From assembly GCA_907165135.1 (NCBI GenBank), contig OU015568.1:5890001-5954000 (forward strand): a DNA stretch of 64,000 bases, given 5' to 3'. Of this stretch, positions 4,114 to 51,021 are shown in pieces. How positions within the stretch are numbered: the first letter of the stretch is position 1; every line of letters starts with the position of its first letter. This DNA comes from Oikopleura dioica. Its lineage: Eukaryota > Animalia > Chordata. The notes under the pieces are model-generated. The model saw nothing but the letters and a program-made list of their open reading frames with translations, was not told where the DNA came from and did no database searches. The position numbers and the translations under genes were made by a program.

Positions 4114-4119
4114 TCCTGA

Positions 4120-21341: not shown

Positions 21342-24300
21342 ATGCCGGAAGAAACAGAGGAAATTGAAATCGAAGAGTTCTACTTTTTTTTTCGTTCAAA
21401 TTCTCACCCGTTATTTCAGGTTGACCCTGGACAACAGGACAAATGCGATAGTACCGGCGCCGCTAAAAGCGAATCGGGCGAGAATCAATGTCTCGGGGAC
21501 GAAGTTTGAGACTTTTATCGCGACGCTAGAAAAGTATCCAGGTAAGAAAAGGTTGCCATTAAGGGTTTCTCGTTGTTATTTAAGGGGAGAGGTTTTGATT
21601 AAAGTTTGTTCAGCTTCATTTATTTGATTAATTGATCGCCAACGAGTTCAAACTTAAGGGTACTACCATCGATTTCTCGAACTTTTTCCTTTTTGGATAT
21701 CAAAGGTAGTCCCCTTAATTTTCTGTTTTTTTTTTTAGATTCGCTACTTGGAAATCGCGAAAAGCGCCAAAAATTCTTCGATGCCGAAACTGACGAATAC
21801 TTTTTCGACCGAAACCCCGAATGTTTCAAAATTATTCTGGAAAGGTCAAAAAACGCCTTGCCGGGGACAGTCTTTGCCGAGCACTTAAAATATAACTACT
21901 TGGAAAACACTTGGAGTCCAAGTTCATGTTTGAAAATTCATGATTTTTGACCTTGACTGTGAGTCGTTTCTACAGTCGGATAAGCTGACGCTGCCGATGA
22001 CGGTGGACATTGAAACCCTCGCCGCGGAAATTTCTTACTTCGAATTGACGTTCAACTTCATCGACCGAGAAGTTCAAACTGAAGAGGACCTTTTTACAAA
22101 CAAAAAAAAGGTATTGACCCCTTTTGAACCCTTTTTATTTAACAAACAAATGAAGACAAAAAAGGACAAAGTGGTAATAGTAAGGGTAAGAAATTGCATC
22201 TTTCGTTTGTCTCGTCAAAAATGATATGTCAATAGAAAATATCAATAGCATAAGTGCCAAACTACTAGAGAACTCTTTGTGTCTGTTTAGATGTCAATAT
22301 TAAGGGTATATCAAGGGCTTAAGGCTTGGAAGCCCTTAATATACAGCCAGAATAAGTGCCTGTTTTTATCCGCTTTTTAGGAGAGCTCTCGAAATCGGGA
22401 AAAATTCGAAAAGCGATTTGGGACATGCTGGAGAAGCCGCAGAGCTCGACTTTTGCTTTCTGCTTTTCGGTGTTTATTCAAATGCTTATTCTGCTCTCCA
22501 TTCTGATTTTCGTCTTGGAGAGTTTGCCTGAATATCGCATCGAATACGGTAAAATCAGATTATTCAAAAAATATTGTTCAAAAAATTTTCTCAGTGCCGA
22601 CTTACATGGAGCCCGTTTTAAAATCCTTCAACTGCGAGGAAATAATCGACCGCTCCTGCTCCGTCTGGAACGACGTCAGTTCCTCCGACTGCCAACAACT
22701 CTGTCTCAACAACTCGATTCCAGACGACTGCTCCTTTTTCAACAACCGCCAATGTCACTCCGTCAGCTACGACGAATCCAGCAGGCAGTGCGTCTTCCAA
22801 TCAAACTGCAAGGAAGAAGAAGTGCTCTTCGAAAAAGTGATAAACGACGAAAAAGCGAGCGACATCGAAAAAACACTGGCGGTTTTTAGCAGCATAAATG
22901 CTGTTTGCATCGCGGTTTTCACGATTGAAATTATTTTGAGACTCATCGCCACTCCAAAGGTACAAATTTGAGAATTTTTTTTAAGAAAAATAGTCTTCCA
23001 TGATTTCAAAGACTAGAGTTAATCGAATAGGCTATTTCAATTTTAACCCATCAGTGCTTGCTAAGTCCAATCTTGGCTCGGAAACCTGTCTAGAAAACCT
23101 GAGTCATGGTCTGAAAGATCTTTAGTGAAAAGCCTAGTAGCGGCTTTTTTTAAAACAAAGCCGCAAAGCGGCTTCGCTAAAATAGAAGAAATTGATTCAA
23201 ATTGAAAGATATTATATCCTTTTTAGCGAAGTTGCCTTGCGGCTTAGTTTTTAAAAAGCCGCTGCGCGGCTATTCATCTTGAGATTTTTCAGACCCTGAC
23301 TCAGGTTTTCTAGACAGGTTGCTGAGCCCTTTATTTATTCCGGCAAGAGTTGATGGGTTAACTCATCATTGCTTTTTACCAATTATTTGGCTGTCGATCA
23401 GTTTTTAACAGTTGATTTAAATTTATCCAACACAGATTTTAATTGTGATTAATTAAAAATCTCGAATTAGAAAGAAGGCCCCCGTAGCAAATACAGCGGC
23501 TTCGGAGTAAGTAATTTCTTTCCACTTTGCATATTCCGTGCTTTGCATTTATAATCCGCCGTTGCTCATTCCATTTCCTCGTAACCCGCAAAACTAACCT
23601 TTCAGAGAAGACAAGAGCCACGGAAGAGAAAATCGAGCCGGCCGAGAGGCGTTGAAGAGAGTTCTTTTCACAAACGGCTGCGCTTTTTCTCAGCAGATTT
23701 CCGAGCTGCTCAAGGGTATCCTTTTTCGGGTATTTCTTGTCCAATCAAAATATTCATTCGTTTTTTTCAGGGTGATGATTTTTGTAAGCTATTTTTGAAA
23801 TGCATGCTTTTGCAGAATTGCAGGTTTTTCAACGACTTTTCGACTAAAGCATCAATAAGTCCTTTTTGGGCAAATTTGCTCAAATAGGTTAAATTTAGCG
23901 GATGAGCCATTGACTTAGTTTGGCAACAAGTGTAGAAAAGCTGTCTCAGAAATCCTCTTCTCAGAGCCCTGAGGCAGTTTTTCACACAAGTTGTTAAACC
24001 AACTAAATGGTTTCTTCGCAAAATTTAACCCATTTGAGCAAATCTGTCCAAAAAGGACACAAATCAAAAGTCGTAGGAAAACGCCGCAACTTTGGTGTTT
24101 CAAAATTCCCTTCTTCATCATTCTAACCTCCTCATTTCTAGCCAAAAGCCTTCTTCCTCGACCCGCTAAATATCATCGATCTTCTGGCAGTTCTGCCATT
24201 TTACATCGAACTCGTGATTCTTCAGGTTTATGGTAATCATGCATGAAACAGATTTGGAGTTGGAGATGCTTTCTTTCCAGAATTTATTGAGTTCAAATTC

Positions 24301-26130
24301 GAATAGTGATCATTAGATTAGACCAGTAATTTTGCTTTTATGATTTGCTTGAAATTATGATCGAGCTCTCTTTTGATTGGCTAAGGTTGGAGCGCCACCT
24401 ACTCTTTGATTTTTCTTGAATCTGATTAGACGGAATAAGGGAACTCAATTGATTTAATACTTAAATAATATTTATTACAATAACAAAATATAATTAATAA
24501 TTAAATGATAAAAAATATATAAATATTTAAGTTTTAATGAATAAATAAAAATAATAATAAGAGATAAAATTATTGATGAAATAAATTATTCTGATAATTT
24601 TTAGATTCTGCTGTTTCTTCATTTTATTGTCATATTTCTTTTGAAATATGCTTTCGACATTTTTTTAAATATTTTTCTTTTGAAAAATTCGAAAAAATTA
24701 ACAAAAAAAACCTCCCTCTTTTGAAATGATCTAACAAGAATTGATTTTTTTTTCTTTCGCTGGGCGAGTTTTATTTTTGATTGGCGCAAAAATGAGCAGA
24801 TCAGCTTTGTCAATGTCGTTGATGTTATCATATAAGAGCTCCAAACTGACATTTCTGGAGAGACGAGCGAGCAGAAATCGGAAATGTTTCGCATTTTGCG
24901 AATTATTCGGCTCATTCGCGTCATTCGCATCCTCCGCTTTTCCAGATACAATCAGAATCTTCAAACTCTTGGTAAGCCATTTCCTCGGCTCGGAAACCTG
25001 TGTACAAAACCTGAGTCAGGGTCTGAAAGAAAACTAATGAAAAGCCGCGCAGCGGCTCCTTTATCCAAGCCGCGAATTTTGCGGCTTCGTTTTATAAAAG
25101 CCGCCATGCGGCTTTTCATTATTGATCTTCCAGACCCTGACTTAGGTTTTTACACAGGTTTCCTAACCCAGGCCTTTTCTTATAAATGACCATCTGTTGA
25201 CGTTTTTCTAAGGAAGGAGTTTGCTGAAATCAACGAGGGAAATCGGCTTTCTGATCATGTTTTATTTGATCTTCTCGATTTTGTGCGCGACGATTGCTTT
25301 TTACGTCGAAAATGAAGTCGAGGACACTGGATTCGACAGCATTCCAAGGTACTTAATTCTTTCTCGTCAATTAACCGCTAATTTCTAGTTCTCTCTGGTG
25401 GGCAATCGTAACGATGACTACTGTAGGCTACGGAGACATGTTTCCCGTAACAGGTAAGCAAACAAACGACCGGCTCCATTTCTCTTAACCCGTTTTAGGA
25501 ATTGGCCGATTTATTGGCTGCATAGCTGTTTTCTGCGGTATTCTCTGCGTTGCACTGCCAATTCCATTCATTTCGAATGCCTTTGAAATGGAATACAAGA
25601 AAGTTCAGGTAAAAAAGAAATATTTATTGAATTGGTTTGGTAAACATGTAAGCAGTTTCCTTTTCTGGAAGTATCTCTCTGCCTTTTCGAGCTCAACTGT
25701 CGTCGTTTTTTTCGACGACAGAGTTCGCAATGCGGAGAAATTTTCTCTGTTTATTTTCTCGCCTTCGTAATTTCTGAAAAAATTTGTTTTTTCTGAATAA
25801 AATTCAAGAGCTTACCTCTTTAAAACGCCCTTCGGACTCTACCAAGCCAGTAGACTGATCATTCCAGCTTTTTGCGCCCTATTTATAGCGAAAATTCTTG
25901 ATCTAGAAAAAAATTCCTTCGCGCGGCGCCTTTTTTGAAGCAAATTTCTCTAGACAAGCTTGTTCCAGAGACTCTTGCCATTTCCCCTCCCTCTCAACGG
26001 CCGCTGGTATCTAGAACCTTTGCTTCAGATCAAGTCGAAATTCCCGCTGGACGAGCAAGAGCCCGGCGAAGACGAGACGCTCCGAATGCGCCTGTGCATG
26101 TACCTCTTCGAGCTGCAAATGGAAGGCTGA
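21342..26130 (+). CDS. Shaker-family voltage-gated K+ channel (T1 + S1-S6) with a Cys-rich PAN/apple-like extracellular insert
   Basis: T1 [10 protein letters not shown]...[12 protein letters not shown]1 [11 protein letters not shown]...LESLPEY. S3 [15 protein letters not shown]4 [21 protein letters not shown]. Pore [18 protein letters not shown]6 ALPIPII. Last exon 26029-26130 ends ELQMEG*. Confidence 0.93.
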
Positions 26131-27087: not shown

Positions 27088-28936
27088 ATGAAAAATTCGA
27101 AAGTCAACGAAGCGGCTCTCTTTTCGAATTTTTGCGAAAACACTTCCGCCCATGGTCTCGGAAAAATCTCCGGATCAAAGAATCGAATTCTCAAATCGAC
27201 TTGGGCGCTCATTTTTCTGATTTCGCTGACGATTTTCTTCTGGCAGGCGACAATGCTGATCCTGGATTATCTCGAGTACCCGGTGAACTTGACGATGAAA
27301 GTGGTCAATCATCGCAACTCGACGTTTCCGGCCATCACCATTTGCAATCAGAATCGATTTCAAAATTCGAAATTGCAAGGAACGCCTTTTGAGCCGCTTG
27401 TTCGAATCGACGAGGCGCTAGAAAATGACCCGACGCTGAAAAGAAGAAAGAGAAGATTTGTGGAGCTGCAAGAGTTTTCTGATTTTGAAGAAAATGACAG
27501 TCAGCTGGTTTCGGATCTTTTCGTTCGGAATGAAAAACTCAACTGGACAATGATTCTTGACCAAGTCCCTGTCGATCGAGTCGCTTCTTTAGGACCGGCC
27601 GAAAAAGTGACACTTCTTTGATTGGCGAGAACGAAAAGCCGCTTGCAGCTTGGAGAAAAATGAGGCAGAAGAGCCGCATAATGCGGCCCGCATTATAACA
27701 GGCTTTATTTTTCCTACTCAAAGCCGCAAGCGGCTTTTCACTTGCCAAGGCTACGAAAATCTCTTCCTTGATTTCAAATTCTTTTTCAGCCGAAAACAAG
27801 ACAGCCTGATTTCCGCTTCGAAAGAAGAATCTGAGCAGTTCGGGCAAAGCTTTGAAGATTTTGTTATTTCATGCGAATTTGACCAGGCTCCTTGTGGAAG
27901 GGATGATTTTTTGACTTTTCAGCATGAGCAGTATGGAACTTGCCATACTTTCAATGGTCATTCCATGAAGAAGAGGAGTACCTCAAACATCGGTTAGTTT
28001 CCCCAAATAAAGAGAATCTCAAAGTCTTGATTTCAGGAACGGAGTACGGATTGAAGCTGATTCTCTTCGCCGACGAGTCCGAATACGTCGGCGCCACCTC
28101 CGCGACCGTCGGAGTCCGCTTCGACATCCACCAATACGGATCAATTTCGTTCCCGGAAGAACACGGTCAAAACGCTCCAGTTGGCGCTGCAACGGCCGTT
28201 TCTCTCAGAGCGAATCAAATTTCAAGAACGGTTCTACCTTGGAACAAGGAGAACTGTACCAATGTTTATGACTCGAACGATCCGGAGTTTGACGGACATT
28301 ATACTTACAGAGCTTGTCAGAAAGGATGTCTTCAGCGGCATTTGAGGGATGAGTGTGGCTGTGTGACGTCATTGTTTTTAAAGAAAAATGACCGTGTTTG
28401 TGATTTACTGCACAAAACAACTTGTAAGTGCCTGTATTGTGTCGTCGTTAATTGATTTAATTGAAGACCTTTGTGTTGAAAAAATCAAGGAAGACTTCAA
28501 ATCAGGGCTAATTAGTGACTGTTTCTGCAGCCAGCGTTGTTCCGAGGTCTTTTATGACTGTACGTAAAACTTTCTTTAGACAATGAATAATATTTTTCCA
28601 GTGCACTACAGTACGGTAAAATGGCCGAGTTCTCAATACGAAGGGCTGTTGCTCAGCGCGATTTCGAATTCAACCGCTGCGGCAAAAATTCGCAATTCGA
28701 CTGATCTCCAGTCCGCTGTGGAGGATAATCTGCTCCGACTGAGCTTCACCTTCGACGAATTGAACGCAAAACTGATCGAAGAAAGCCCAAAATACGACAT
28801 TTGGACGCTTTTTGCGAATATTGGCGGAACACTCGGACTATACGTCGGAATTTCATTTATTACTTTGTTCGAATTTCTCGAAGTTGTTGCCGACATTTGC
28901 CTGTTTACCTGCTGCTATCGTTGTAGTAAAGACTAA
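27088..28936 (+). CDS. DEG/ENaC (ASIC-like) sodium channel, copy B, full length
   Basis: N-terminal FCENTSAHG motif, TM1, ITICNQNRF, Cys-rich ectodomain, TM2 with GIS filter. Confidence 0.93.
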
Positions 28937-29141
28937 ATTCAATAAAAAGCTTCCTTTCTTTATGGCGGATAAACTTCTTGAGCCCAGCGCCTGGGGCCAA
29001 TCAGAACGCTCGGAGATTCGCCATCTTTTCTCGCTCTTTTTCAATCTCCCGTTTTTACTATTTTTCGCACTTTTCCGCGTAAAACAAACAAATCAACAGT
29101 CTTCAAGAGCATCAACATGTAGAGAAGAAAACAGTCGAAAA

Positions 29142-30853
29142 ATGAGGATCTCATTGGTTTTCTCGCTTTTAGGACTCGTTTTTGGAGAGAAATTAAAATA
29201 TGAAAACAGCGAGTCTGACAGACCTAATATCGTTTTTGCGATAATTGATGATTACGGATACAACGACATTGGATACCACCAGGTAAATAAACATTTGAGG
29301 CCATGTAAAGAGCTGTTCTTTGAAATAGGACATCATCAAGACGCCGAACATCGATGCTATTTCCGCCTCCGGAGTGCGCCTCGAAAACTACTACGTGCAG
29401 CCAATCTGCACTCCCTCCCGCTCCCAGCTCCTCTCTGGCCGCTATCAAATCCACACTGGCCTGCAGCATCAGCTCATTTGGATGGGAATGCCCTCCGCTC
29501 TTCCCTTAGACACGGAATTGCTCCCCGAGACGATGAGAAACTGCGGCTACCACACGATGGCCGCGGGAAAGTGGCATGTCGGCTATGCCAAAACGGCAAA
29601 CACGCCTTGGGGCAGAGGATTCCAAAACTTCACCGGTTACCTCGGCGGATCGGAGGACTATTACAAGAAAACGCGGTGCTTGGACTCGCACACTTGCGGA
29701 ATCGACCAAAACACGGATGGAGATGTTTTCGGGCAGCGAGTTTACGAAGCTGATCCAAGCGAATACTCGGCGTTTAAATACATTCGCCAGGCGAAAAAGT
29801 ACATTGACGGGCGAGACAAAAACAAGCCCTTCTTTCTCTATCTTCCCATGCAATCAGTTCACGCGCCGCTCGAAGCACCAGCCGAGTACATCGCAAAATA
29901 CGACGGAATCATCGACGACAAGCCGAGAAAGATCTACGCGGGAATGGTGTCCGTGATGGACGAAGGAATAGGAAACATCACTTCACATTTGAAGGAAGCT
30001 GGCTTGTGGAACAACACGATCTTCATCTTCTCCACTGACAACGGCGGACAAGCTTATGTCGGCGGCAACAACCTCCCTTTGCGAGGCAACAAGGGCGGCT
30101 ACTGGGAAGGCGGCGTTCATGGAAACGGCTTCGTCGCTGGAGGATACTTTGAGACCCGAAGAACCGGGAACGAAGTCGTCAACAAGGAGCTCATCCACAT
30201 TTCCGACTGGTACCCGACGATCATGGAAGCTACTGGCTGCCAGAAAGCGCCGAATTCGCCCGATTTGGATGGAATGTCTCAGTGGAAAATGCTCCTGGAT
30301 CTGGAGCAGTCTCGTGAGTCAAAATTCTAGCGCGCTTTTTTTATTGAATTTCGTTAGCTCGGGATGAAATTTTGCATAACATCGACGAAATGACCGTGGC
30401 GAAAGGCTCTGACAATCGAACTTTCAAGTCGGACTTCGATATTTCCGTCCAAGGTAAAGCAAAAATCAACCCTCAAAATTCAACCCAAAAATTCAAGCGG
30501 CGATCCGCTGGAATAACTGGAAATTGCTGACCGGCGACCCTGGCTACCCAGACTTTCCAATCACCATTCCTCCTCAAGGCAACAAAAAGCCCATTTTCAC
30601 GGTCGAAAACGGGCTTCAATACCCAATCCCGCCGCGGCCAAAACCTCTCGACCGACTCGTCCGCCTCTATGACGTCATCAAGGACCCAACTGAGAGCAAC
30701 GAGATTTCAGACTTCCATCTGGACGTGGTTGAATTTCTGCTAGATCGACTTTCGTTCTGGAACTCGACGCAAGTGCCGATCAATTTTCCCGATGTGGATC
30801 CGAAGAGCTTTCCGGAATATCATCAGGGCTTTTGGAAACCTTGGCTTGGCTGA
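29142..30853 (+). CDS. Arylsulfatase B/I/J-like sulfatase
   Basis: Signal peptide, PNIVFAIIDDYGYNDIGY, LENYYVQPICTPSRSQLLSGRYQIHTGLQH, GKWHVG, QSVHAP, FSTDNGG, NLPLRGNK, WEGG, C-terminal WKPW. The introns splice in frame. Confidence 0.95.
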
Positions 30854-31289
30854 ATAAGTGAACTTTGCTGAAAACTGAGAGAAATAAAGAAAAGCATAAA
30901 AAACTGAGGAATTACCTTAATCTTGAATTTGAGAAAGAACTCGTCTGTATGTAATTACACTTTAATTTATGCATCGATAGACCCGCTGTAAGGTAAATTT
31001 TAGCTTCCGGAAGTCAAACATTCGTTGAAATTTACTCAGCTCAGCAGGTAATCTCGCTCACTTCCTTCCTCCATCAAAAACCCCTCCTATTCCAACGCCC
31101 TATAATTTCGACTAAAAATTCGACTTTTACTGGCATGGCGTGGAATTTTTGCAAATTGAATGCTGGGATTTAAACAAGCTCACTCTCGACGATTTTCTTG
31201 GCTCAGTCGAGATCAGGTTCTCTTCCTTGATTTATTTTCTTCAACAATCAAAATACAAATAAATTAAACGAAAAATATATTTTTATTTC

Positions 31290-33746
31290 GCCTTTAATCA
31301 GTGAACAATCGCTGTCGAAATCATCTTCGTCCTTCTCCATGTTTCCGCTGCCCAAAGTAGGGGTATTTCGATCTGGACCGCGGCCATCCCACAGATATTG
31401 ATTGATCAAGAAAGCGTGTTTCTGCAAAAAATAATTTGACTTTTTATTATTTTTTGATATTTTCTCACCACTTTGTTGCTTTCGACGGCTTCAAAGTACA
31501 TTTTGGTGAATACAGGCTCGTCCAGTTTGTTTGGACACCATTTGCTTCCGAGATACCCCTCTAAACCTGTTTCGTTTCGAGTAGCACTAGAATTTTGCAT
31601 GAAAAAGGCTTCAACACTGACAATAAAGACACCTGTCGAAAGAGTGAATTCGTCCAGTGTCGTAGTAGTGCTGCATTCTCTCTTCGTATGGCATTATTCT
31701 CATAATTTTTGCGAGTAATTTGCCTTCTTTTCCCGTGACCGGAACCTCGATTCCCTTCTGCATCTCTTCCGCTACATATGATTGAATTTCGTCTATCAAA
31801 TCCTTGTATTTTCTTAAATTTTCATTCTTCAACGCCAAATTGTTGAGTTCAAAGGGGTCGTTTTTCAGATTATAGAGTGAAAATCCAGAACTTCGAATCA
31901 TCTCGCCAACTTCTTTGTTCGGCTGAGGATCAGACAAATCCCAAACTTTTCTCATGTACTTTTCTCTTTTACTCGGATCCGGGAAAAGAAACTTCGTGTG
32001 CTCGTAGTTTGACCATCCTTCGGGACATTGGGTATTTCCGATGAGCTTTGATTGATAGTTCATAAACTTGAAATCTCCGAAACGCACAGCGTAAGTTGTT
32101 TTCCAGGCAAGATTTTCTTCGTGCCATTTGTGTAAAATCGCGTAAATAAATTTATCTCTGATTTGAGAAACAGTCGAGTTCTCGAAAAGCGCGTGTTGGT
32201 CGATTCCATCGAGATTTCTTGGCAGCGGTTTATTGTAACCTTTCGAGAGCTTTGAGAGCCGAAAATTTTTTGATTGAAAAAATTTTCTTGGGCTCTTTCC
32301 TGCGAAATGAAGAATGGTCGGAAAAAGTCCATGATGTTGATAATTCCGTCGATATTTCTCGAATGAAATTGCCTTTTAGTTGAATAGATCCAACTCGGAC
32401 TCAGGGTTCCTCCTTCAGTCAGGACGCTTTTATATCCTTTGTAGGGAAAACTGCATCCTCGTGGACCTTTTTCAAGACTGTCATAGGCCTGGAGGGCGCC
32501 CCCGTTGTCGGATTGAAAAATTACGATGGTTTCTCGGTCGAGTTTTGATGCTTCTTTGATGACACTTTCCATGGCGATGTCAATTGATTTCACAGCGGCG
32601 AGTTGCATTCGTCGGGTACTTGGTAAATCAGGATAAAGAGCGTCCATTTCATCCTGAGGATGGCGTCTTTTTTCAAAGATTGAAGACCTTCCTTACCTTC
32701 AAAACTTGTGGAGCAGCGACTATTTCATGCGGAGCATTAAAAGCAAGATACACAAAATTCGGCTGATCTGCATTTTCTCTCAAAACTTTGTTCGTTCTGT
32801 CCTGGGGTCGGCATCCGTGCACGGCGCCCGGGGCACGTGCCCCGCCCCGCTGCCCCGAATGCCCCGTTTTTTACAACGGGGCGGGACGGGGCACCGATTG
32901 TATGGTGCCCCGTTGTGCCCCGCTTCACTATTCTTGGTAAAATTGAGGTTCTAGAAATGGATTTGTGGCTCAGGGGCACACGGGGCAAACGGGACACGCG
33001 GGGCGGGGCGGGGCACCATGATTCGACGCGCCGATGCCGACCCCAGGTTCTGTTACTCCAAGTGTACGAAGCGAACTCGAAGCCGTTCTCAGGAATGTGC
33101 GGCTCTCCGTTTAGAAAATGATTCAGATAGTTTCTAAGATGCCCTGAAGCAGCATGAGTATGGTAGTCGACTGCACCACCATAATGACTTTAAATCAGCT
33201 GAAATCAAAGCGAGAATGAGAACCTACCCTAGAAAAGTGTCAAATCCTCGATTCTGCGGGAGAAATGAGTCATTGCAATATCCAAGGTGCCATTTGCCCA
33301 CTGCATGAGTTGTGTATCCGATCTTTTTCAGGTATTCTGGCAGAAGTTTCTCCTTGAGGCTGAGTCCATTTGGAACTTCGGAAGAAAGAGGGTCCGTCCC
33401 AAGGCCGTATCGGAAAGCATACCTACCAGTGAGCAGCTGAGCGCGCGAAGGAGTGCATCTTTCCAAGAATTTCGCATTTTAACGATTCAAGCCTTGAATT
33501 TCAAGGATCCTTCATTCTAGTTATTTTAATTCTCTTCCTATGAGTTGAATAAGAGTTTCTCAATTTGCTGGCTCTGCCCGTTTCAATCAAATCCGCCATA
33601 AAAGGCGTCGAATTAACGGCTTTGTTATTCCAAGTGACATCTGACCATCCCAAGTCGTCAGTAAGCACAAAAATTATATTTGGTCTCTCATCTGCTGATA
33701 CCCACGATTCGATAAAAATCAGAAGAAAAAAAGGAAGGGTAATCAT
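31290..33746 (-). pseudogene. Arylsulfatase copy B (inverted paralog of 11875-14032), probably disabled
   Basis: Same exon structure as copy A. It carries a 245-bp insertion inside exon 3 and a 1-nt deletion in a T-run near 32325 (five T after GAC vs six in copy A). Confidence 0.85.
32802..33046. mobile_element. GC-rich hAT-like MITE with GGGCAC/GCCCC repeats, inserted in a sulfatase exon
   Basis: TIR CTGGGGTCGGCATC / GATGCCGACCCCAG. 8-bp TSD GTTCTGTC / GTTCTGTT. Copy A at about 12545-12560 shows the empty site. Confidence 0.9.
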
Positions 33747-33989
33747 TTTCTCTTTGATCGGAAAAAATATTATTTGAGCGTGATTTTTTAAAAAGGCCGA
33801 AAATTATCTCATCTCCGAATCTGTTTTTCTGAGATTTTCAAAATATGAATTTTCTTCCATGCGCGCTTTTTGGATCCGAAGTTCTAGTTTTGGAACTTTT
33901 TGCAAGGATAAATCAGATAAATAACCAAGGAAAAATCTACATTCTGATTGCCTCGGTTTTGCTGAGCCTGATTTATTTTGAGGTAGTTT

Positions 33990-34255
33990 TCATTAGGCTA
34001 AGCTTACTTAGCTTAGATAGAAATAAATAAGCTTAGCTAAGCTAAATTGAATCGCTTGGCTAAGTTAAACTTAGCTCAAAAATTTAAGCTAAGACTAACT
34101 AGCTTCAACATGATTTTAGCTAAGTTTGCTTAGCTTACTTAAATAACTTATTCCGAATAAGCTTAGGGCGCCTAAGTTAGGGGGAGATACGACTAAGCTT
34201 TGCTAAGCTTAGTATTTTGAAAGAAAAAAATTCAGCTAAGCCAAGCTTAGCTTCA
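33990..34255. repeat. (CTAAG/CTTAG)-rich self-complementary repeat, probably a MITE remnant
   Basis: Dense GCTAAG, CTTAGC and AAGCTT units over about 260 bp. No clear termini identified. Confidence 0.55.
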
Positions 34256-34631
34256 TTTTTCAAGCCGAATACTGAAAAATAATTTCATTATTTGCTAGAA
34301 TTAAAATTTTATGAAAAATATTTTTTTATCAAAACAGAAATTATAAAAACGATGCTCCTGAAAATCTTTCCAGAAGCCATTGAATTTGAAGTAGTCTTCT
34401 GAGCAGCGCTTGTTTGAAATTTGCTTGGCGATTGAGCAAATCTTGTCCGAACATTTAAATTTTCATTTTGATTTCTTTGCTTGTTTGAGCATTTCTAATT
34501 TCGAGATATCAAACCATAGCGACAGAGAAAAAATTAAAAAGCGCTAGAGGAGCTGTTCAAACAGAAAATTTGAAACAGAAATCAGAAGACAATTGTTTCG
34601 AATTTGTAAAAACGAAAACGAAGAAAGAAAC

Positions 34632-37600
34632 ATGATGATTGAAATGAACTCGAACAATGACCTGGGACTCATTGCCGAGGAGGCCTCTATTCCAGAGATT
34701 GACGAGTCTAAGGTAACACTCGCAACAAGAAAACCTGAGTCAGGGTCAAAAAGACCTCTTACTAGAAAGCGCGTAGCGGCTTTTTTCTAGGACGAATTCG
34801 CTTTGCTATTTTTTTGATGAATTTTCAAATCCTGGCGAAGCCGCCCTGCGGCTTTCTTTAAAAATTAAGCCGCTCTGCGGCTATAAATCAAAATTTCTCA
34901 GACCCTGAATCAGGTTTTCTACACAGGCTAGATGAGCGCCAATTTGATTCATAAACTTCTGCTTTATTGGGGGGATACCCTTAATCTTCCCTTACTCATT
35001 TTCCAAAGGAAAACTCCTTATTTTCCGAACCGTTAACCTACCACCGCCCTTTGGTCCATTTCCGACCAATCTCCCTGCCCGAGGTAAAAAAAACAAGTCC
35101 ATGCATAGAAATATCTTATTATTTGTATGCCCTTAAATGTCCTGACTCCCAGGCATGCGAAAATCTAAAGTTAATACTTCAGATGTTCAAATAAATTCTC
35201 TTCCGGCGTGAAGAAAATTCATTTTTTTAAAAATTCAAAATTGCAAAATTTCAAAATCAGAAATTTCAAAAAACAAATATTTCATTCTTCCTTCTTTTTT
35301 TTTGGAATCCGTTTTCGTTTTCTTCCTTGATCAGCAATTTTTGTTGACAGAACTCTTCAAAAAGTCGATTTTTGTCAGAAAGAAAAATACAGTTCTGAAG
35401 TTGTTCGCTTGATAATGTCATGTTGATTTTGACGTTATCGCAGGAGATGAAATTTTTTTTAAGAAAACACGAAGGCTCAGTCGGAGATTTTCAAGGGCAT
35501 TTATTGGCAAAGCAAGGAGACATACGATGACGGAATTGGTTGAAGATCGAAATTCTAGGAAAAGATTTGAAAAATAGAAGAGCTCGCTTTCGGGGCTAAA
35601 AAAGCCGCGCGCTGCTAATTTTCGAAAAAATTTTCTTTCTCATAATCTTCGAGGGAGAAAAGACTTAAGCCGCGCTTTTTGCGGCTTTTTTGTTTTTTTT
35701 GCTCGAAGCCGCAAGCGGCTTTTCGTCTATTTGTTAGCAAATTGAAGAAAAAGACTAGAATTTTAATCAAATTTATCCGCATGCGGCTTTTTGAAAATTA
35801 GGCCCAGTTTTCAAAATCTTGAAAAGACGAAGTTCCTTAAAATTTGGCCGAGAGGAAACTCAAACTAGCACAGGTAAATTTCAAATTCGCCAAAAATGCA
35901 AAACTCTTTCTTATTTTATTCGTTTGCACTTTTTCGAAAATTCTCGTTTTGTTTAAAAAGTTGTAAAATTTTACGCGATAATGAGCTTCTTTTCCACTTT
36001 GATCGTAAATTTGAAGCTCATCCGGCTTCGTTTTTGGGGCGGCAGCGATCTGATTCCGTGACGTCGGGAACAACTGCTGCGGATGGGAGAAGGGGAAGTC
36101 TGCTTTTTGGAAATCGGCGAAATTCTAGCGTTAGGAATCGTTGCGAAAATGAACCTTTTAGAAAGTTTAATTTCACGTCGCTTTTCGACCTCGTTTTGAA
36201 TGAAAATTCGGCAACGCTGATTTGAGGGCTTTGGCCGATTCGAAATTCCGCTCTGCGGTCAAAAACACCATCATGGTAGAGTAACCGACCGATTAAATTC
36301 GAGACCGAGACACATTTCTATTTGTGTTTTCGAGGGATTAGCGATGCAATATGAAGCGAAAATCGATGAAAACTGAGCTCTTTATTTGCCTTTATTACGA
36401 GAAAATAACAGTATTTGAAAGCCAAGAAGCTGAGGTTCATTTTGACTATCGACAGTAGGGAGGTTCAGTCATGCCCTGAGGGGGTTTCGGAGCTCCAAAG
36501 TCATGTAAGTATAGGATATCCAAAAAAAGCCCTCGGGGCATGCTTGACCCCCCCTACTGTCAATAGTGGAAATGATCCTGAGCTTTTGGGCTTTCTATAA
36601 CTGTTATTCTCCTGTAACTGGGGCAAGTAGGAGCTCAGTTTCAACGATTTTCTCCAGGAAAACATATTGCCAATATACCAAGTTTGAGTATATTTAGGAA
36701 AAACATCCTTTTTCAGAAACAGCGGGCAACGGTGTTTCCTATCACGCGATTTAGAATCGTTTTGAAGGAGTTTATGATGGTAAAATTGTCGATAAACAAA
36801 AGCAACAATCAATATTCTTTTTCAAAAATAATCATTAGCCGAAAAGTGAATAGCCAAATTCAGAAAAATCAGTCTTATTCCCTCAGAAATCGGTTTTATG
36901 ACGAATCGACGAGCTAGTATGACGGTAAGAAACGAAAACAATCAGTTGAAAAGAGCGTCGAATACAGGAGCAATACTGTAACTTGCTTTGTTTAGAATAG
37001 ATTGACAAACGATGGAAGGACATTTTCAGGCCTGCCGATGACATTTTACAACCCGGAATATCAAGGAACGGGTCAGATTTTGATTTTTTGAGGTGGTTTT
37101 GAAATTCTAGCCAATGTTTTCAAGCCTTTAGTCGACTATTTAAAATAAAAACTCGATTAAATTTTTGACCAGTCGAAAATTTCAGGGAAAAAGTCGAAAA
37201 AATCGGGAAAATTGAAAAATTTGCCGAGGAAAAATCAACATTTTCGACAAGTTTTTCGACTTTTCCGACATAATTCTCGACAAAATCAATCAATTTGTCG
37301 ACCAGTCGAAATTTTTGTCGACAAACTTCACCCTGGACTTGGCAACCTGTGTTGAAAACCTGAGTCAGGTTTGATAAATAATTGAAAAGGTTATTTTGCC
37401 TGACTCAGGTTTTCTACACAAGTTGCCGAGCCCAGCCTTGAGCGCCCAAAAGTGCCGAGACATATTTTTCGCACACGTGAGCATTTTCACAGGACGGCCA
37501 AATCCTCGGATCCGAAGTCCTTGGCGCATCATCCGAATTCGCTTAATTTTAATTCGCCCGGATCAATTCGGCGATCGGAATTTCACTCAGCGCCCAGATC

Positions 37601-38551
37601 TTCGGATTTCTCCGATTTCAAATTTTCAAAGCCAGTTTCCTTGCTTTTTTCAAAAAGGATTTAAAAAGCTCTGAGCCTGGGAAAAAGAACGTGAATTGTT
37701 CGAAAACACCTACAAGCTCAATCCAGATCGCAAATTCAAGTAAGTTTGTTTTTCTTGAGCAGCATCTTTTCTTCAAGAGCATACTGTCACGAATGACTGT
37801 TTGTTGTTTGTGAAGCTGGGTAAAGAGAGAGTTCCAGGAGAGTTTGTACTTTACAAACAAATTTATCACTTGATGAACAGCTTCAAAATAAACACTGATG
37901 TATCGAAAGCAATTCATTTTATTACAGTAGTTTTCGATACGAAAAGCGCGAGTATACTCGGGCACGTGGGTTTCTGGGCTTGGAAACCTGTGTAGAAAAC
38001 CTGAGTCATAAATTAAAAGGTTATTTTGCATAGCCGCTTCGCGGCTTCGTCTCTTAAAAAAGCCGCTCCGCGGCTTTTCATTAAAAATCTTCAGAATCTT
38101 TAAAATTCAAGATCAAAATAGGATCGTAAATTTTGCTGTGACTGGAAGACTGTGGTCAATTGGACATTTGTTGATAATTTTTTTTATAACTTTGTATTTC
38201 AGCGTGGCAAATGTCAAGCCCCTTATCGCGGCTACAGTGGCGAAATTTGCGGAGAACTCGAGCTACAGCCACTACCACGCCCAGAGCCGCGTGGGAATGA
38301 TGTGCGACAGGGTGCGAGAAGAACTCAAGCAGTTTGGCTACGCGCGCTATCGATACATTATTTCAGGTTTGGAAATTTTTCTCGATCGAAAATCCCGATT
38401 TTCAGGCTTCATCGGGGAACAAGGAAGACACGGACTGCACATCGCTTCGAGATCGCTCATCAACGACACTTTCGACCGCTCCTTCGAAATTTCAATCAAC
38501 ACGCCGAAATGCATCACCATTTGTACTGTCCACGCCATTTTTACTGAATAA
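34632..38551 (+). CDS. Tctex1-domain dynein light chain (TCTEX1D-like), probably with a long RRxS-rich N-terminus
   Basis: Core exons give FENTYKLNPDRKFNVANVKPLI...RYRYIISGFIGEQGRHGLHIASRSLINDTFD...TVHAIFTE*, the Tctex-1 pattern. The core (36860-38551) is firm. One junction to the upstream exon block is unresolved. Confidence 0.75.
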
Positions 38552-38679
38552 AAAAACGTAAATCAAAACGCGCCGCGCTAATCCGAAATCAACAGCGCCA
38601 TCTGAGCGGTTCACGAAATTCTCAAAATTCTCCTTGCTTTTCACTTTGTGAAAAAAATACAAAGAGAAAGGCTGAAAAG

Positions 38680-40120
38680 ATGAAAATCGCACACTTTGGA
38701 ATTTCGGGAGTTTTGGGAAGCTCGCTGCTGAAATTCGACTTGGCGGAAAGAACGAGAATAATGGAGCAAAGCTTGAGTTTGAGAAGATGGGACAATTTTT
38801 ATGAAATGTTTATGGCCAAATACGACTTTGTAAGTAGAAATCACTCTTTTCTATTTCAGTCTCGGCTCGGCAACCTGTGTAGAAAAACTGAGTCAGGGTC
38901 TGAAAGATAATTTTTTAGAGTTGCAAATTTGCTGAGCTGAGTGAGCTGAGCAGTCGCTCAGCTCAGTGATTTTGGAAAATGATCTGATCTGCTCCGCTCA
39001 GCTCAGCTCAGACAATTATCACTTGGCTCAGCTCAGCTCAATGATTTTAATACAATTATTCTACCGAAAAACAGTAAAAACAGCTCAGCTCAGCTCTAAT
39101 AAGGGTCCGCTCAGCTCAGCTCAAAGCTCTTAATCAAACGGTCTGCTCAGCTCAGCTCCGCTAAATGACCTCTGAAAAAAGCCAGCTCAGCTCAACTCAG
39201 GTCAGTTACCTCGAAAATAAACCAGCTCAGCTCAGAGAAATTTTTACTCAGGTCAGCTCAGCTAAGAAAAATTAATCAAAATTTGCAACTCTGGAAAGAT
39301 CTAAAACAAGAAGCCGCGTAGCGGCTTTTTTTTTGCTTTCTTCTTTGCGGCTTCGCAAAATAACATCTCCAAGCAATTTTGCGGCTTCTTATTGGAGATT
39401 TTTTCGACCTGACTCAGGTTTTCTACACAGGTTTCCGAGCCGAACTGAAACACAGAAGAGTGATTTTCTCCATGTCCATATTCTCCTTCTTTTTTCTAAC
39501 GTTTCTTCTCTAGACCGATTTGATGGAGATCTACAGCTACGGATGCTACTGCCTGAGCATGGGCGACCGACCATTGAGCGGCACAAACGCGAATCGACCT
39601 CCAGTCGACGCCCGGGACGAGCAGTGCAAAGCCTGGACTACTTGCTACAAGTGCGCCAGAATCGACGTCAACAAGAATTGCCAGCCGGAACGAGTCAACT
39701 ACAGCGTATGATAAAATTTTATTTTGATGATGTATTTTTTAATTGAAGTGGTCGATGGACGAAAACAACAACATCGTCTGCGCCGCCGACAACAATCCCT
39801 GCAAAGCGGCGATTTGCGAGTGCGACAAATATTTCGTCGAAAACTTCAAAAGCATCGATCACACTTTCAATACTGATTTTAGGTAATGCTTTATTGGAAA
39901 CATCATTTTATCTTTCAATTTTTCATTTAGCGAATTCCACGGATTTGAGCGTCAACAAAACTGCTACACCTCACGTGACTCTTCTGGCTCGAACGGCTCC
40001 GGAAACAGCAATACAGTGACTTTGGAGTGCTGCGGCGAGGCGGGTAAGCGAGAGTTTTTCAATTCAGAAACGAAAATGTGCTGCGCTGATGGATCTATCA
40101 AGCCGCTTGGGCTTTGTTAG
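38680..40120 (+). CDS. Secretory PLA2-like protein with a substituted catalytic dyad
   Basis: YGCYC calcium-loop region, PVDARDEQCKAWTTCYKC (the canonical form is CCxxHDxCY), CKAAICECD, and a Cys-rich C-terminal extension ending KPLGLC*. Confidence 0.85.
38916..39293. mobile_element. (GAGCT)n hAT-type MITE, second copy, nested inside a CCTGAGTCAGG MITE in the PLA2-like intron
   Basis: Ends TAGAGTTGCAAATTT and AAATTTGCAACTCTG. It is the reverse complement of 6864-7281. The host element spans about 38858-39441. Confidence 0.85.
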
Positions 40121-40302
40121 AGAGAGATGCTTTTTTTAAATTGTACATTTTATTTGAAATAAACTCAAAATTTGTTAATTTATTTGTTTTATTAGTGAGA
40201 ATACGCGTGCAAAATTACAGAGAAAATTTTTTGGAAAGAAGGCCAACTGAGACTGAAGCTTAAATTTTACTAGAATTTATTCAAAAAAATTTGGCTTACT
40301 GT

Positions 40303-42461
40303 TTATCTCCGAGTAAGAGTGATGGAATAGGCTTGAGGCAGAAGATACCACTTCTCAGTTTCCATATTGAAACCTTCGTTCGTCAAAGGAATGACCTCGT
40401 TGTTCCGTCCGTAAAAGACATAATCTTTGTTCCAGTTGAAACAATCTCTCATCATTTCTTGAGAAGCATAGAATTCGCGAGAAATGGGAATTCTGACTTG
40501 AGCGCCGGAATGGTCGATGAGCGTATTTTGGAGAATGAAGGCGGAGTTTTCGACTCGGTCCAGCACCATTTGGTGGAAGATTAATGATCCGTCGGGGGTA
40601 AGGTAGGCGCCGGTGACTGTCAGGGGACGGGCGAAGGAGAATTTTGGGTGCAGAAACACTGAAAATATTTGATTTTAAAAAAAGCTAAAATAACCTAACT
40701 TGATACCTGACTTGAAATCTAAATTGCCTCTAGTTTGTTTAATATAATCCATATTTTTCACAATTTGCCATCCACTTTTATTCAAATAAGTTTCAAATTT
40801 CAATCTTCTGAGAAGCAACTCAATTTCGTTTGTTTGGAATTCTCGTTCTTCGAATTTCGGATTTAAATTAAGTCCAGCCAAACTCCGCGGATATATAATC
40901 ATTGTCAGAATTGTAAAGATTGTTTCATATGAATAATAATCTTTCATTGTCGAGTCTTTAACTCGCAAATCATTTTCCAACGCCCATCTCAAAAGAGTCG
41001 TGACTGAAATTGGCACACAAAGATTGCTTTCTTTTTGGTTCAAAACATTTTTCGTCACGTTTTTGAAGTCGAAATTGATCTGCTTCGTCATTTTCTGTTT
41101 TAGATTGGACATCGCCGAAGACTTTGTCAAGTTTTGATCGTCCAGGCAAAAATGGGAAGGCGCGTTTTCTAGCGAGATTACTTCTGACAGGCTTTCGATT
41201 TCATAGGTTAAGGGAGTTTCTCTTGATAGCCAGGCCGCATTGAATCTCTTAAGAATTGCAATTGTCAAAAAAACGAAAGATTCAAAAACCTTAAGTTCAT
41301 TTTTGATCTTTTCTCGCTCGCCGTCTTCGATGGGATTGTAAAGAAGACTCCAGGCAGACTTCCAGTCGCAGAGAATCAAAATGTGAAGTGGCGATCCATC
41401 TCCTCCGTTTCGATCACAAATTTCGGCACTTCCCGAAAACGCAGCGGAACCAGAAACTAAAAAAATCACGGAAAATTAATAATAACCGTATTTAAAACTT
41501 ACATAAATTAAAGGAATCTCTATATTTGCTTCCTCTCCGCGCGTAGCCCATTTCGCGGTAGCTCCTTCTTCCAGTTCTTTCTTCTAACGTTCCGTAATCG
41601 ATTAACTTTGGTTCTCCATATTTCAGGAGAACATTCTCGGGCTTCTTGTCGCGATGATGGATTCCGACGCTTTCCAAATAATCAAGTCCTTTTTGCACTC
41701 CAATTGCTATTTTCTTCCGCTCTTCCAAGTTGAGATCTTCTTTTTTCAGCCGTTTTCGAAGATCGCAGTCGCACTTTTCCATGATTGTGATCCATCCTAT
41801 ACAATCGCCCTTATCCTCGTCTTTGCTCGAGTAGACTTCGATGTTGCAATGATTTTTGATGATATTTGAATGTCGGGGGATCACGGGAACGTCATCTCTT
41901 TCGTCGTTTTCTGCGGTTGCGTAATCTAAGAATAAAAAAATCGAGAAGAAACTGATTCTTCTTACCCTTTGAAAGATGAATCTCAAATTTCAACTCCGCC
42001 TCTTCTCCCAAAAACAGCGCCGAGTCAAAAGCCTGAACTCTAACCGCAACGTCCAATTCTCCAAATTTTTCTTCCAAAACAATCGCTTCTCCTCCTTCAG
42101 AAATCGGTTTAAAAGATTTGTCCAGAATCCATTTTCCAGTTTCCTCTGTCAATTCAGATCGCGCGTTTTTTCGACTTTTAAAACTCGGATTTTTTTCAAG
42201 AATCGTTTTTTGAAATGTAGAAATCGCCCATTTTTCTCTTTCATTGCCATCACGAAAAACTTTTCCTTCTCCATTTTCAAAAACAACCTCCTCCCAACAA
42301 GCATTATAAGAATTTTCAAACTCGTGTCTCTCAAGCGACAAAATCAGTCTGTCCAAGTCATCTCTGCTCGTCGTTCTCTTCAACTTCTTCTTAAAACCCT
42401 CCAGCCATTTTTCAACCGCTTCTCTCGTCAATTCTTTTGGATGCGTCGTCACTGGATTCAT
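40303..42461 (-). CDS. Atypical kinase fused to a papain-like domain, copy B (Gln/Cys/His/Asn-type residues all present)
   Basis: Same exon structure as copy A. HRDKKPENVLL, IDYG, NQKESNLCVPIS, FHQMVL, FILQNT. Confidence 0.78.
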
Positions 42462-43154
42462 CTGCAGCTTCTTTTTCTCGACTTCGAAATTCAAAAAAAG
42501 TAAGTTTTTAAAATTGCTCTTCTCAAAAACGGAAGATCATAAACCGGCAAAAAAGCGCTCCCTTGACTCTGAAATTACGACTTTGTTTTTATTACCACAA
42601 AAAAAAAACGAAGTCAGAGTACCCGAAAAATCGTAATTTACGATTCGTTAACCCCCGTGTTAAGCTCGCCAATCTGTGTTGAAAACCTGAGTCAGGGTCT
42701 GAAAGATCAAAAATGAAAAGCCGCAAAGGGGCTTTATTTTCAAAAGATGTAAGCAAGATGTTAAATACACATAACAAAGAAAATTTCGCGAAGCAGCTTT
42801 GCGGTTTAAAAAAAAGCCGCTTTTCATAATTGATCTTTCAGACCCTGAGTCAGGTTTTCCACACAGGGATTTCGAACTCTGTTGCCGAGCCCAGCCCCTG
42901 CGAAAAAGAATCTTCTATTTCATATAAATTCTTAAAAAATCGATCAATTGACAAAATAAATATGGTAAAATTTTATTCACAAATAATAAATTTTTCATAA
43001 ATTTCTTTCATTTGCAAAATGGTGGGCAATGATTGACGAAAAAATGGACAGAAACAAGCTTTTTTTGACAATATTTAATTTCAAGAATTTTCATCAATTC
43101 GGCTGCTTCCTGAATTGAAATGCATGTACAAGTGAGTTTACTGGAGGGGTCTCC

Positions 43155-46789: not shown

Positions 46790-49393
46790 TATGGAAAGGA
46801 AACGTGTTGGAATTATCTGCGGCTCAGCGCCCGGATCGCCAAAAAGTGACCGGTCAGATTCTGTTTCAGTAACATGGATCCGGAAGATGCGCTAAGCCAC
46901 CAGGGTTTTGTGCAACTCAATATCACGGTAGTTTCTTTTTTAAAAATAGACTTCGATTTTGGACGGAGCCAAAATGGGGTTCTCGTCATTTTGTTTTCAA
47001 TTTGAATTTGATATTCTTACGTTTTGAAGATGCAGCAAGTTTTCAGAAGACGCTGCCTGTGCCGCGATGGTACAGAGGGAATTGTAGAGATGCGGGTCGG
47101 CGCGGATCGCCGGCGAGCAGTGGATTAATGCGGCCAGCCAATTTGATGTCAGCATCGCTAAAACGACGATTTTTATTTTGAAGATTTGCGGCTTCGAGCA
47201 AATAAGAACGAAAAAGCCGCGCTGTGTGCGGCTTAAGTTATCTTTGACTCGAAAAACCATATCTCAAATTCAAAAAGCCGCGCGCGGCTCATCAGTCCTC
47301 TTATTTAAGCCGCGCGCGGCTTCTTTATTTTGTTATATAATTTTTCGAGCCAAAAAGACCATGAGCCACACAAAGCGCGGCTTTTTCGCTTTTATTTGCT
47401 CAAAGCCGAAAGCGGCTTCTCGAGTTTTAACAATAAAAAACCATGATGTACCTTGATGTTGTGTGGAAGTCGATAAAAGAGCTTGTGGAAGATGTGGAGT
47501 CGTCGGTAAAATTCGCTCGATGCTCAAGTTTTTGGAAAACTTGATCTCCGTCGATTCGGCAGAATCAGACTCGTTGGAGCCTTGTCCGACCGAACCCGTT
47601 CTTTCCAGTCGTTTTTGACTGCCAGTTCCTGCTCTTTCCGGCTCGCTGGTGTAAAAGGTCGGCATGATCAGGCCATGAGCGGGTGTTTTCTGCGCCGTGT
47701 GGATTCTCGATTGTTTTGGAAGAGATTCGGAAGGGTCGAAAGTTTCAGAAAGTCGCTCTCTTTTGTAGACTCGGCGGCGAATCTTGTCTTCGGAGCCTGA
47801 AACCGGAGATTTAAAAACGCCCTGCATTTTCGATTCTACCTTTGTGGACTGCGGGGAGCAGCTCATATACACGGTACGGGTCAGAAATGTCCAGCCGCGA
47901 CAGGTCGGGTAATTCGCGAATGTCAGGCATTTTATTGAGAGCGCAGCGAAGACGAGTTTTCCAAACGATGGGCTCGGGCTTATCGACTCCTGAAATGAGA
48001 AATTATGAAACAGGTCATTTTTGACATGTTTGCAGAAGATATTTATCGAAATATTACAGAAAGAAATTAAAAATTGGGTTCTTTTGAATGATGATTTTTG
48101 ATTGGCTCTTATTGAAAAAACTGGCTTCTGATTCGTCGAAAAGCCCGCTGGACCCAAATCTTGCTTTTTTGTTCTTTTTTGATTGTAAAAAATAAAGGGA
48201 TCCCCATCTCATAGAAAAAAAAAACTTCAGTAAGGTCGCCATTTTAACGGATTTTATGACTGTACCTTCTCTGTACCGCCCCGAATGCTTCGCCCACTCC
48301 ATGAAGATCTTAGAATCTTCGAGGTTGTAATCCTGTCTTCCAGCATGCTTCCACGGCATTCGAAATATCGTCCTATCTTCGTTCAGCCAAGTCAGTCCTG
48401 GAACATCGCCGCTAGAATTTATTTTGTGAAAATCGAGTTAATGAATTTGAAAGCGGAAATATAGCGGATCAAAGCGATCAACCCAAAAGCGAATGTTATT
48501 GAAGTGAAAGGGTAAAAGTATAAATTTTATGGCGGCTGAGAGATCAAAGTTGCGATGAGTACCAAGTCGGCTAAATCTTTCACTTTCAAGCTCAAATTAA
48601 CGAGACCGCAACACTCAGAAAAACTGTCGTTTCAAGCCTTTTCGAGCAAAAACAAACAAATTAAAAAAAAACATAAAAATGAGTTTCACACCTGTCGAAA
48701 TTCTGATAAATTGATCAGATGAAAAGCCGCTTGCGGCTTCAAGAAAAAAGATTAAAGCCGCAGCTAACGCGGCTATTTCAGATAGCCGATTTCTCCTGAT
48801 GCGCGCGGCTTTTCGATCATATCATTGGAAACTTTGCGGCTTTTTGTCGGCTTTTGAGAAAACAGCCGCCTGCGGCTTCAGGCAAGAATTCTCCAAAAAG
48901 CGGCTTTTTCACTTTTTAGAAAAATTTTATGATTGACTTACCCATCGATCATTTTTTCGAGCCAGGTTCTGAGTCTGTCCCTGTATTCGTATTCGTGAGA
49001 TCCAGTTCCCAACGAACCTGTGGATCCAGAAGAGCTACCGGTTGGAGATCGCGGTCCATTTGACTGGAGAATTTGATCTACTGTCTGTTTCTGAATAATT
49101 TTTTATAAAAAAGGAAGAGATTGGCTGATCTGCATTTTGATATTGTAAAAAGCCGCGCGCGGCTTCTTTCCTCAGCTTCAAACCTGCGTGAAAAACCTGA
49201 GTCAGGGTTTTCAAGATCTTTTAGGAAAAGCCGCGTTAAAAGAAGCCGCAAATCAACGCGGCTTTTAATGAAAGATCTCTCAGACCCTGACTCAGGTTTT
49301 CTGCACAGGTTGCCGAGCCCATCTAAAAACTGATAATTACTGTACCTTTACAGGGCCATTGGAAAGCCAAGGTCTTTGAAAATCAAGCGTCAT
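46790..49393 (-). CDS. Interferon regulatory factor, IRF4/8-like DNA-binding domain
   Basis: Spliced DBD reads RLRTWLEKMIDGGDVPGLTWLNEDRTIFRMPWKHAGRQDYN...FMEWAKHSGRYREGVDKPEPIVWKTRLRCALNKMPDIRELPDLSRLDISDPYRVY, with all five Trp present. The 3' end is approximate. Confidence 0.92.
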
Positions 49394-50849: not shown

Positions 50850-51021
50850 AAGGGCTCGGCAACCTGTGTTGAAATCCTGAGTCAGGGTCTGAAAGAGCTG
50901 AAATGGCAAGCTGCGCAGCGGCTTTTTTGCGACTTTGTTCCTCAAAAAGCCGCGGTGCGGCTTTCCATTTCAGCATTTTCAGACCCTGACTCAGGTTTTC
51001 TACACAGGTTGCCGAGCCCAG
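50850..51021. mobile_element. Representative copy of the dominant CCTGAGTCAGG MITE family (about 23 copies in the window)
   Basis: Ends GGCTCGGCAACCTGTGT-AAA-CCTGAGTCAGGGTCTGAAA and the reverse complement, with an AAGCCGC/GCGGCTT core. Other copies lie near 3880, 14668, 15088, 16650, 17125, 18035, 18810, 20345, 20822, 23075, 24985, 34728, 37335, 37975, 38858, 42655, 45745, 49180, 49800, 51483, 52565 and 62715. No consistent TSD seen. Confidence 0.9.

Follow-up and report, generated by a model that had tools for sequence, protein, structure and literature searches.

Papain-type hydrolases typically carry an oxyanion-hole Gln six residues before the catalytic Cys. Kinases with a natural Lys-to-Arg change, KSR1 and STRAD-alpha among them, bind ATP, with catalysis poor or absent. 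Here we describe a gene of the planktonic tunicate Oikopleura dioica, a chordate, that joins domains resembling both. It occupies positions 40303-42461, on the minus strand, of a 64,000-nucleotide stretch of DNA (the window; contig C1:5890001-5954000), and its relatives were sought across the whole genome (64.3 Mb, 19 contigs). The gene, referred to below as copy 1, is a single, intact fusion gene encoding 660 amino acids. We propose that its product is a cytosolic protein composed of an N-terminal region, a divergent kinase domain and a papain-fold thiol hydrolase, the kinase-like domain serving as a nucleotide-bound switch in cis. We infer the hydrolase activity, the nucleotide binding and the regulation in cis, and put the probability of the reading as a whole at roughly 0.6.

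The coding region of copy 1 comprises five exons that sum to 1983 nt, i.e., 660 codons and the stop, with no internal stop. The original prediction, made from the letters of the window, had one frame running across four short GT-AG introns, and this is what we found (41926-41965, 40 nt; 41457-41502, 46 nt; 41248-41289, 42 nt; 40659-40706, 48 nt). Three of the introns are in phase 1. The third (42 nt) contains no stop and preserves the frame, which therefore stays open with or without its removal. An AATAAA lies ~20 nt 3' of the stop codon, and the start ATG is directly preceded by a CAG acceptor-like site. Exon 1 (41966-42461, minus strand, as are all exons) encodes an N-terminal region to which no fold could be assigned (amino acids 1 to ~115) and the kinase N-lobe, with SEGGEA at 42084-42101 and VAVR at 42039-42050, where Arg141 takes the place of the beta-3 Lys. 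The kinase core follows in exon 2 (41503-41925), with the catalytic loop HRDKKPEN at 41633-41656 and DYG at 41591-41599. Exon 3 (41290-41456) holds the degenerate end of the activation segment (SGSAAF) and the alphaF-like CDWKSAW of the kinase C-lobe. Exon 4 (40707-41247) begins with a linker containing the conserved FCLDDQNLTKS (41119-41151) and continues into the helical half of the papain-fold domain, with NQKESNLC at 41017-41040 (Gln433 and Cys439) and YPRSLAGLNLNP at 40858-40893. Exon 5 (40303-40658) supplies the beta-sheet half, with FHQMVLD at 40558-40578 (His571) and ILQNT at 40522-40536 (Asn587), and ends at the stop. All the strings quoted in the original prediction (SEGGEA, VAVR, HRDKKPEN, NQKESNLCVPISVTTLLR, FHQMVLDRVEN and AFILQNT) occur in the frames given for them. 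The N-terminus (MNPVTTHPKELTRE...) is hydrophilic, with no segment resembling a signal peptide on inspection, the only check made, which agrees with the predicted lack of one. Sequence and fold searches were run exon by exon or on intronless paralogues.

A real in-frame fusion of a protein-kinase-like and a papain-fold domain had been predicted, and both the GT-AG frame of copy 1 and its relatives bear this out. In the paralogues L032 and L033, the N-terminus, the kinase and the part corresponding to exon 4 are all contained in one open frame, 655 amino acids long in the former and 669 in the latter. NCBI models of O. dioica proteins also combine both parts, for instance CBY13560.1 (664 amino acids). 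Several database models hold just one half, and operons and spliced-leader trans-splicing are widespread in O. dioica, so one may ask whether the kinase and the papain-fold part are separate products in vivo, arising between exons 3 and 4 through trans-splicing, polyadenylation or a promoter inside the gene. The stop-free third intron, which leaves the frame open either way, and the uninterrupted frames of L032 and L033 argue against this, as do the identical order of modules and intron phases in the paralogues examined and the occurrence of both modules in one open reading frame (ORF) in divergent metagenomic relatives. We consider separate products highly improbable and retain the single fusion protein.

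To what does the C-terminal domain correspond? We obtained an AlphaFold model of this domain alone from an intronless paralogue (L031:154-1011), using an alignment of 138 rows. The model has a mean predicted local distance difference test score (pLDDT) of 79 and a predicted template modelling score of 0.73, and its core is mostly above 85 in pLDDT. In a structure search independent of Foldseek (48,161 chains), the top 50 rows were all clan CA peptidases. The best matches were pro-Der p 1 (Z 10.7; 169 aligned residues, root-mean-square deviation (rmsd) 4.2), xylellain (10.6), Der f 1 (10.3) and cathepsin B (9.5), and the rows also included the C39 domain of PCAT1 (9.3), IdeS (7.8), UfSP (7.2), ZUFSP (7.1), Gal6 (6.5) and ATG4A (6.4). 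A second-look search returned 86 chains with Z of at least 8, and all 50 of those listed were C1-family peptidases. Foldseek gave cathepsin L as its best match, with a probability of 0.96. Most of the top alignments begin at the conserved Gln of the model (residue 63), which is paired with residue 19 of cathepsins K, L and F, residue 23 of cathepsin B and residue 67 of Gal6. We take these to be the oxyanion-hole Gln positions, in which case the Cys six residues later falls on the catalytic Cys. In the model this Cys opens a helix (69-85), the His lies on a strand (186-198) and the Asn follows just past the next strand. The domain is thus predicted to have the papain (clan CA) fold that had been expected for the C-terminal part, as judged through the L031 model, and to be closest in structure to family C1A. 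The suggestion that it is deubiquitinase-like found no specific backing: C1A cathepsins (Z ~10) rank ahead of UfSP and ZUFSP (Z 6.0-7.2), and none of the deubiquitinase families UCH, USP, OTU, Josephin, UfSP and ZUFSP was matched in Pfam.

The putative catalytic set of copy 1 consists of Gln433, Cys439, His571 and Asn587. Cys and His are 132 residues apart and His and Asn 16, compared with 134 and 16 in papain, so the papain order and the matching spacing of the original prediction both stand. Conservation of each residue was assessed over 50-58 distinct paralogues per position, out of roughly 120-130 loci. The Gln is kept in 57 of 58, the Cys in 55 of 58 (the other three have Ser), the His in 56 of 57 and the Asn in 55 of 57. 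The sole exception for the His is a second copy of the gene in the window, copy 2, which reads FDQMVLD. Ratios of non-synonymous to synonymous substitution rates (dN/dS) against eight paralogues were 0.25-0.57 for exon 1, 0.09-0.32 for the kinase exons and 0.19-0.42 for the C-terminal domain, indicating purifying selection on all three parts. Together with within-genome E-values down to 1e-91, these ratios (0.09-0.57) exclude chance as the source of the family.

On these grounds, we would expect the C-terminal domain to be a catalytically active thiol hydrolase that cleaves peptide or isopeptide bonds. A papain fold could also house some other thiol-dependent activity, of the transglutaminase, acyltransferase or amidase type, or a non-catalytic binding module. 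Such a non-peptidase role would fit the lack of any peptidase family detectable by sequence, the missing C1-type Trp after the Asn (QNT here, NSW in C1 enzymes), and the Ser for Cys (3 of 58) or Asp for His (copy 2) in copies whose frames are open. However, the top structural neighbours are all peptidases, mostly of family C1A, the oxyanion-hole Gln stands six residues before the Cys in 57 of 58 copies, and the four residues are almost invariant under purifying selection, which points to catalysis. We therefore regard a domain that is no peptidase as very unlikely, and keep the thiol hydrolase as our working assignment. The three paralogues with Ser at the nucleophile position, all in open frames, are L009 (C5:15523962-15524489, NLSVP), L028 (C4:5411718-5412242, DLSVP) and L033 (C4:3230988-3231509, FLSVP). 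They recall SERA5, a papain-fold protein with the same Cys-to-Ser change that is also among the structural matches.

The kinase half is easily recognized. Exon 2 matches the Pfam family Pkinase (PF00069) with 46.2 bits (cut-off 31.7, E 4.9e-12), its paralogues score 36.9-44.8 bits, and among its 296 matches to PDB sequences (E up to 0.001) those listed are all protein kinases. These neighbours are generic Ser/Thr or CAMK-like kinases. The oddities noted in the original prediction, in the Gly loop and at the beta-3 Lys, are real and shared by the family: Arg stands at the beta-3 position in 50 of 50 paralogues (VAVR in the window gene), and the Gly-rich loop (SEGGEA) departs from GxGxxG, retaining only the GG doublet, with GGEA invariant (50/50). 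The catalytic-loop Asp is kept in 55 of 56 paralogues, the Lys two residues after it and the Asn in all 56, and the Asp of the DFG motif (DYG in the window gene) in 56 of 57. The Arg of the HRD motif is found in just 3 of 56, one of which is the window gene, so the kinase-like domains are mostly non-RD. Exon 3 aligns with GTPGFASPEQ and FLFCQWNTAW of a metagenomic subfamily, and the APE-like motif is degenerate in the window family. For the region from amino acid 1 to ~115, features from the ESM language model gave only weak leads resembling a kinase N-lobe.

We favor, although not strongly, a nucleotide-binding switch with putative ATP binding over a robust kinase, because the natural Lys-to-Arg kinases KSR1 and STRAD-alpha bind ATP and catalyze poorly. 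The pattern of retained residues could also be read as that of a bifunctional enzyme, in which an active non-RD Ser/Thr kinase, Arg standing in for its beta-3 Lys, modifies the linker or substrates by phosphorylation, alongside a protease whose targets may be the same or different. Such an enzyme would be expected to keep the catalytic Asp, the Lys typical of Ser/Thr kinases, the Asn and the DFG Asp, as this family does. In addition, dN/dS is lower in the kinase part (0.09-0.32) than in the other two, and the linker motif NLTKS offers an invariant Thr and an invariant Ser. The Arg without exception at the beta-3 position, the Gly-rich loop cut down to GG, the degenerate APE-like motif and the poor or absent catalysis of KSR1 and STRAD-alpha nevertheless make a working kinase rather unlikely, and the nucleotide-binding switch remains our preferred reading.

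Several results weigh against the proposed switch-and-hydrolase protein. The change of the beta-3 Lys to Arg classically kills kinases, which makes a switch based on phosphotransfer doubtful. The modelled paralogue L031 has only 48% identity with copy 1 in exon 4 and 42% in exon 5, and a first model of 381 residues, which included the tail of the kinase C-lobe, reached a pLDDT of 63 and gave no fold matches. Moreover, a Z of ~10 speaks for a shared fold, not for activity. At the sequence level, the C-terminal ~270 residues matched no Pfam family above threshold, whether as exons, as ORFs of paralogues or as 52 members of the alignment. The sole match below threshold was to Peptidase_C1_2 (PF03051) around NQKESNLC (15.3 bits against a cut-off of 22, E 0.009), in 2 of the 52 members. 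Phmmer searches of PDB sequences and profile searches with this domain found no peptidase, and comparison by hhalign with one C1 ORF of the same genome, an atypical TINAG-like sequence without the catalytic Cys, gave a probability of 0.2%.

Other comparisons place the domain nearer to the papain-like peptidases. Language-model features put it closest to clusters of C39-like and Mac-1 peptidases. A divergent metagenomic subfamily carries the motifs HDQxxTNLC, PHAVT and FxIKNS, which are near the classic C1 motifs, and hhalign relates this subfamily to the Oikopleura family with a probability of 99.7%, its HAV...KNS falling on HQM...QNT. The subfamily was not found in the O. dioica genome at high identity. 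The domain did not match PF00112 (Peptidase_C1), and a genome-wide scan for PF00112 gave 19 matches at about nine places, none of them at the loci found with the family exons. Since a clan CA fold is predicted and membership by sequence failed for C1, C39 and the deubiquitinase families, the domain, judged by the model, is best classed as a new family of clan CA. As a separate observation, an intronless ORF of 323 amino acids at C5:2118991-2119962 (L043:692-1663, plus strand) is cathepsin-B/TINAG-like and reads CGASFAFS against the CGSCWAFS of C1 enzymes. The catalytic Cys is thus missing, with the His and NSWG kept.

How might the protein work? With neither a signal peptide nor a classical propeptide, a hydrolase of this kind must be controlled inside the cell. 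The switch, we suggest, would be the kinase-like domain of the same chain, working in cis and binding nucleotide. The linker motif FCLDDxNLTKS, with its invariant Thr and Ser just upstream of the fold, may be a propeptide-like or phosphorylatable latch, which nucleotide binding or phosphorylation would free. In several rows of the structure search, the helix just past this motif, a low-confidence part of the model, is matched to procathepsin propeptide segments. Among the database models of paralogues, several (P0004, P0019 and others) start with a hydrophobic segment (MLELSILAFFATCIAGMIQVA...) that is absent from the window gene. Either some members are membrane-anchored or secreted, or their 5' exons are mis-modelled.

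The original prediction counted two copies of the gene. This holds for the window, and the genome holds far more, the family having at least 120 members. Matches to exon 4 were found at no fewer than 133 places, 14 of them with internal stops, and matches to exon 5 at no fewer than 123, with the densest clusters at 14.5-16.6 Mb of contig C1 and 11.0-12.7 Mb of contig C2. Copy 2 lies at 1448-3604 of the window on the minus strand. All five of its exons are open and the Cys is kept, and Asp replaces the putative catalytic His (FDQMVLD, 1700-1720). It is 76-84% identical to copy 1 per exon, with 82% identity of the DNA over 2.6 kb (1411-3968 against 40269-42867) and dN/dS of 0.25-0.42. One more copy lies on either side of the window (C1:5886291-5887230 and C1:5969798-5970734), making a local cluster of four.

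Outside the genome, an exhaustive profile search of 1.84 billion representatives returned 240 clusters. The named ones looked up among the best 150 all come from O. dioica, as 'unnamed protein product' or OKI2018_I69 models, and the others are fragments from marine metagenomes. A word search with the divergent relative P0171 likewise found metagenome proteins only. One such marine relative, P0156 (686 amino acids, from an ENA metagenome contig; also P0169 and P0171), has a papain-fold module, a kinase C-lobe and a second papain-fold module in one ORF. Its motifs are more canonical than those of the window gene (GFASPEQ in the kinase, HAV...KNS in the protease), and the first module has TAV at the position of the His. 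A viral origin was set aside, there being no BFVD matches at E <=0.001. Carriage by a transposon was rejected as unlikely: copies 1 and 2 share intron positions, their homology extends no further than ~35 nt past the stop codon and ~400 nt ahead of the start codon, and dN/dS stays under 0.6.

A role in defense is speculation drawn from sequence features, and it would fit a large, diverged and clustered family of mostly non-RD domains with a faster-evolving N-terminal region. In one version, the family would form an intracellular arsenal of guards or decoys, each a single chain. The non-RD, ATP-binding pseudokinase and the variable N-terminus would serve as bait or sensor for factors of pathogens or selfish elements, and their disturbance would release the fused protease as executioner. 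This would explain why more than 100 diverged copies are found in an animal thought to have a reduced set of classical immune genes. We consider this version quite unlikely.

The surroundings of the gene have themselves been duplicated. A MITE-like (miniature inverted-repeat transposable element) inverted repeat at 42674-42866, ~200 nt upstream of the start of copy 1, has arms of 51 nt that are 90% complementary. It was duplicated with the gene, as the match between copies 1 and 2 runs over it. Its arms recur in the window near 3911-3984, 20397-20456, 23072-23328, 24984-25174, 49254-49319 and 50957-51021. The first 5700 nt of the window (1-5700) are a patchwork of duplicated pieces with counterparts in 27511-42867, and these pieces differ in age or rate of change. 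Besides the piece with the two gene copies (82%), 121-1301 matches 27781-28961 (93%), 4242-4688 matches 28943-29388 (92%), and 5453-5684 matches 39935-40164 in inverted orientation (95%). Just 3' of the gene, at 39743-40120 on the plus strand, small ORFs with a CECD-type Cys-rich sequence (...NNPCKAAICECDKYF...) are a candidate, by motif alone, for the PLA2-like neighbour of the original prediction.

Both building blocks of the protein are of known kinds. What is new is their fusion, the position of the protease domain outside the Pfam families and the expansion to more than 100 genes in a compact chordate genome of 64 Mb. Full-text literature searches found neither a description of this kinase-like and papain-fold architecture nor a paper on the gene family. 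Should the protease prove active, with the nucleotide state of the kinase-like domain controlling it, the family would represent a single-chain switch of a new type, for signalling or as an effector, and a large area of Oikopleura biology still to be explored. At the least, it offers a new clan CA family and a new lineage of natural Lys-to-Arg kinases for structural and biochemical study.

Among described proteins, the C1A peptidases (cathepsins K, L, F and B, and Der p 1) share most with the C-terminal domain. The predicted fold is common to both (Z 9.3-10.7, 150-170 aligned residues, rmsd 3.3-4.2 Å), and both have Gln-x5-Cys at the start of a helix, followed by His and Asn on successive strands. 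However, identity in the structural alignments is only 10-14%, and the domain gives no Pfam, HMMER or hhalign signal for C1A. The window protein also differs in having no signal peptide, classical propeptide or NSW-type Trp, and in placing the domain C-terminal to a kinase.

Bleomycin hydrolase and PepC (family C1B) are cytosolic and have no signal peptide, traits that the window protein would share, judging by inspection of its N-terminus. The residues around the Cys (NQK-S--C) yield the only Pfam match, below threshold, to this group (E 0.009), and yeast Gal6 is a structural match (Z 6.5) whose alignment starts Gln to Gln (model residue 63 to chain residue 67). The score is nevertheless under the cut-off and confined to 2 of 52 members, the window domain is ~170 residues shorter, and we saw no sign in the window family of the hexameric barrel architecture of the bleomycin hydrolase type. 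The C39 domains of PCAT1 and ComA (Z 8.6-9.3) resemble the window gene in another respect, as compact papain-fold domains fused to another module. They differ in being domains of bacterial ABC transporters with a Cys/His/Asp set, in aligning over fewer residues (~126) and in giving no sequence match. For the kinase domain, the nearest parallels are KSR1 and STRAD-alpha, which have Arg at the beta-3 Lys position and keep the other nucleotide- and metal-binding residues, as it does. We found no specific sequence relationship to either, and what sets the window gene apart from both is the fusion of such a domain to a putative hydrolase.

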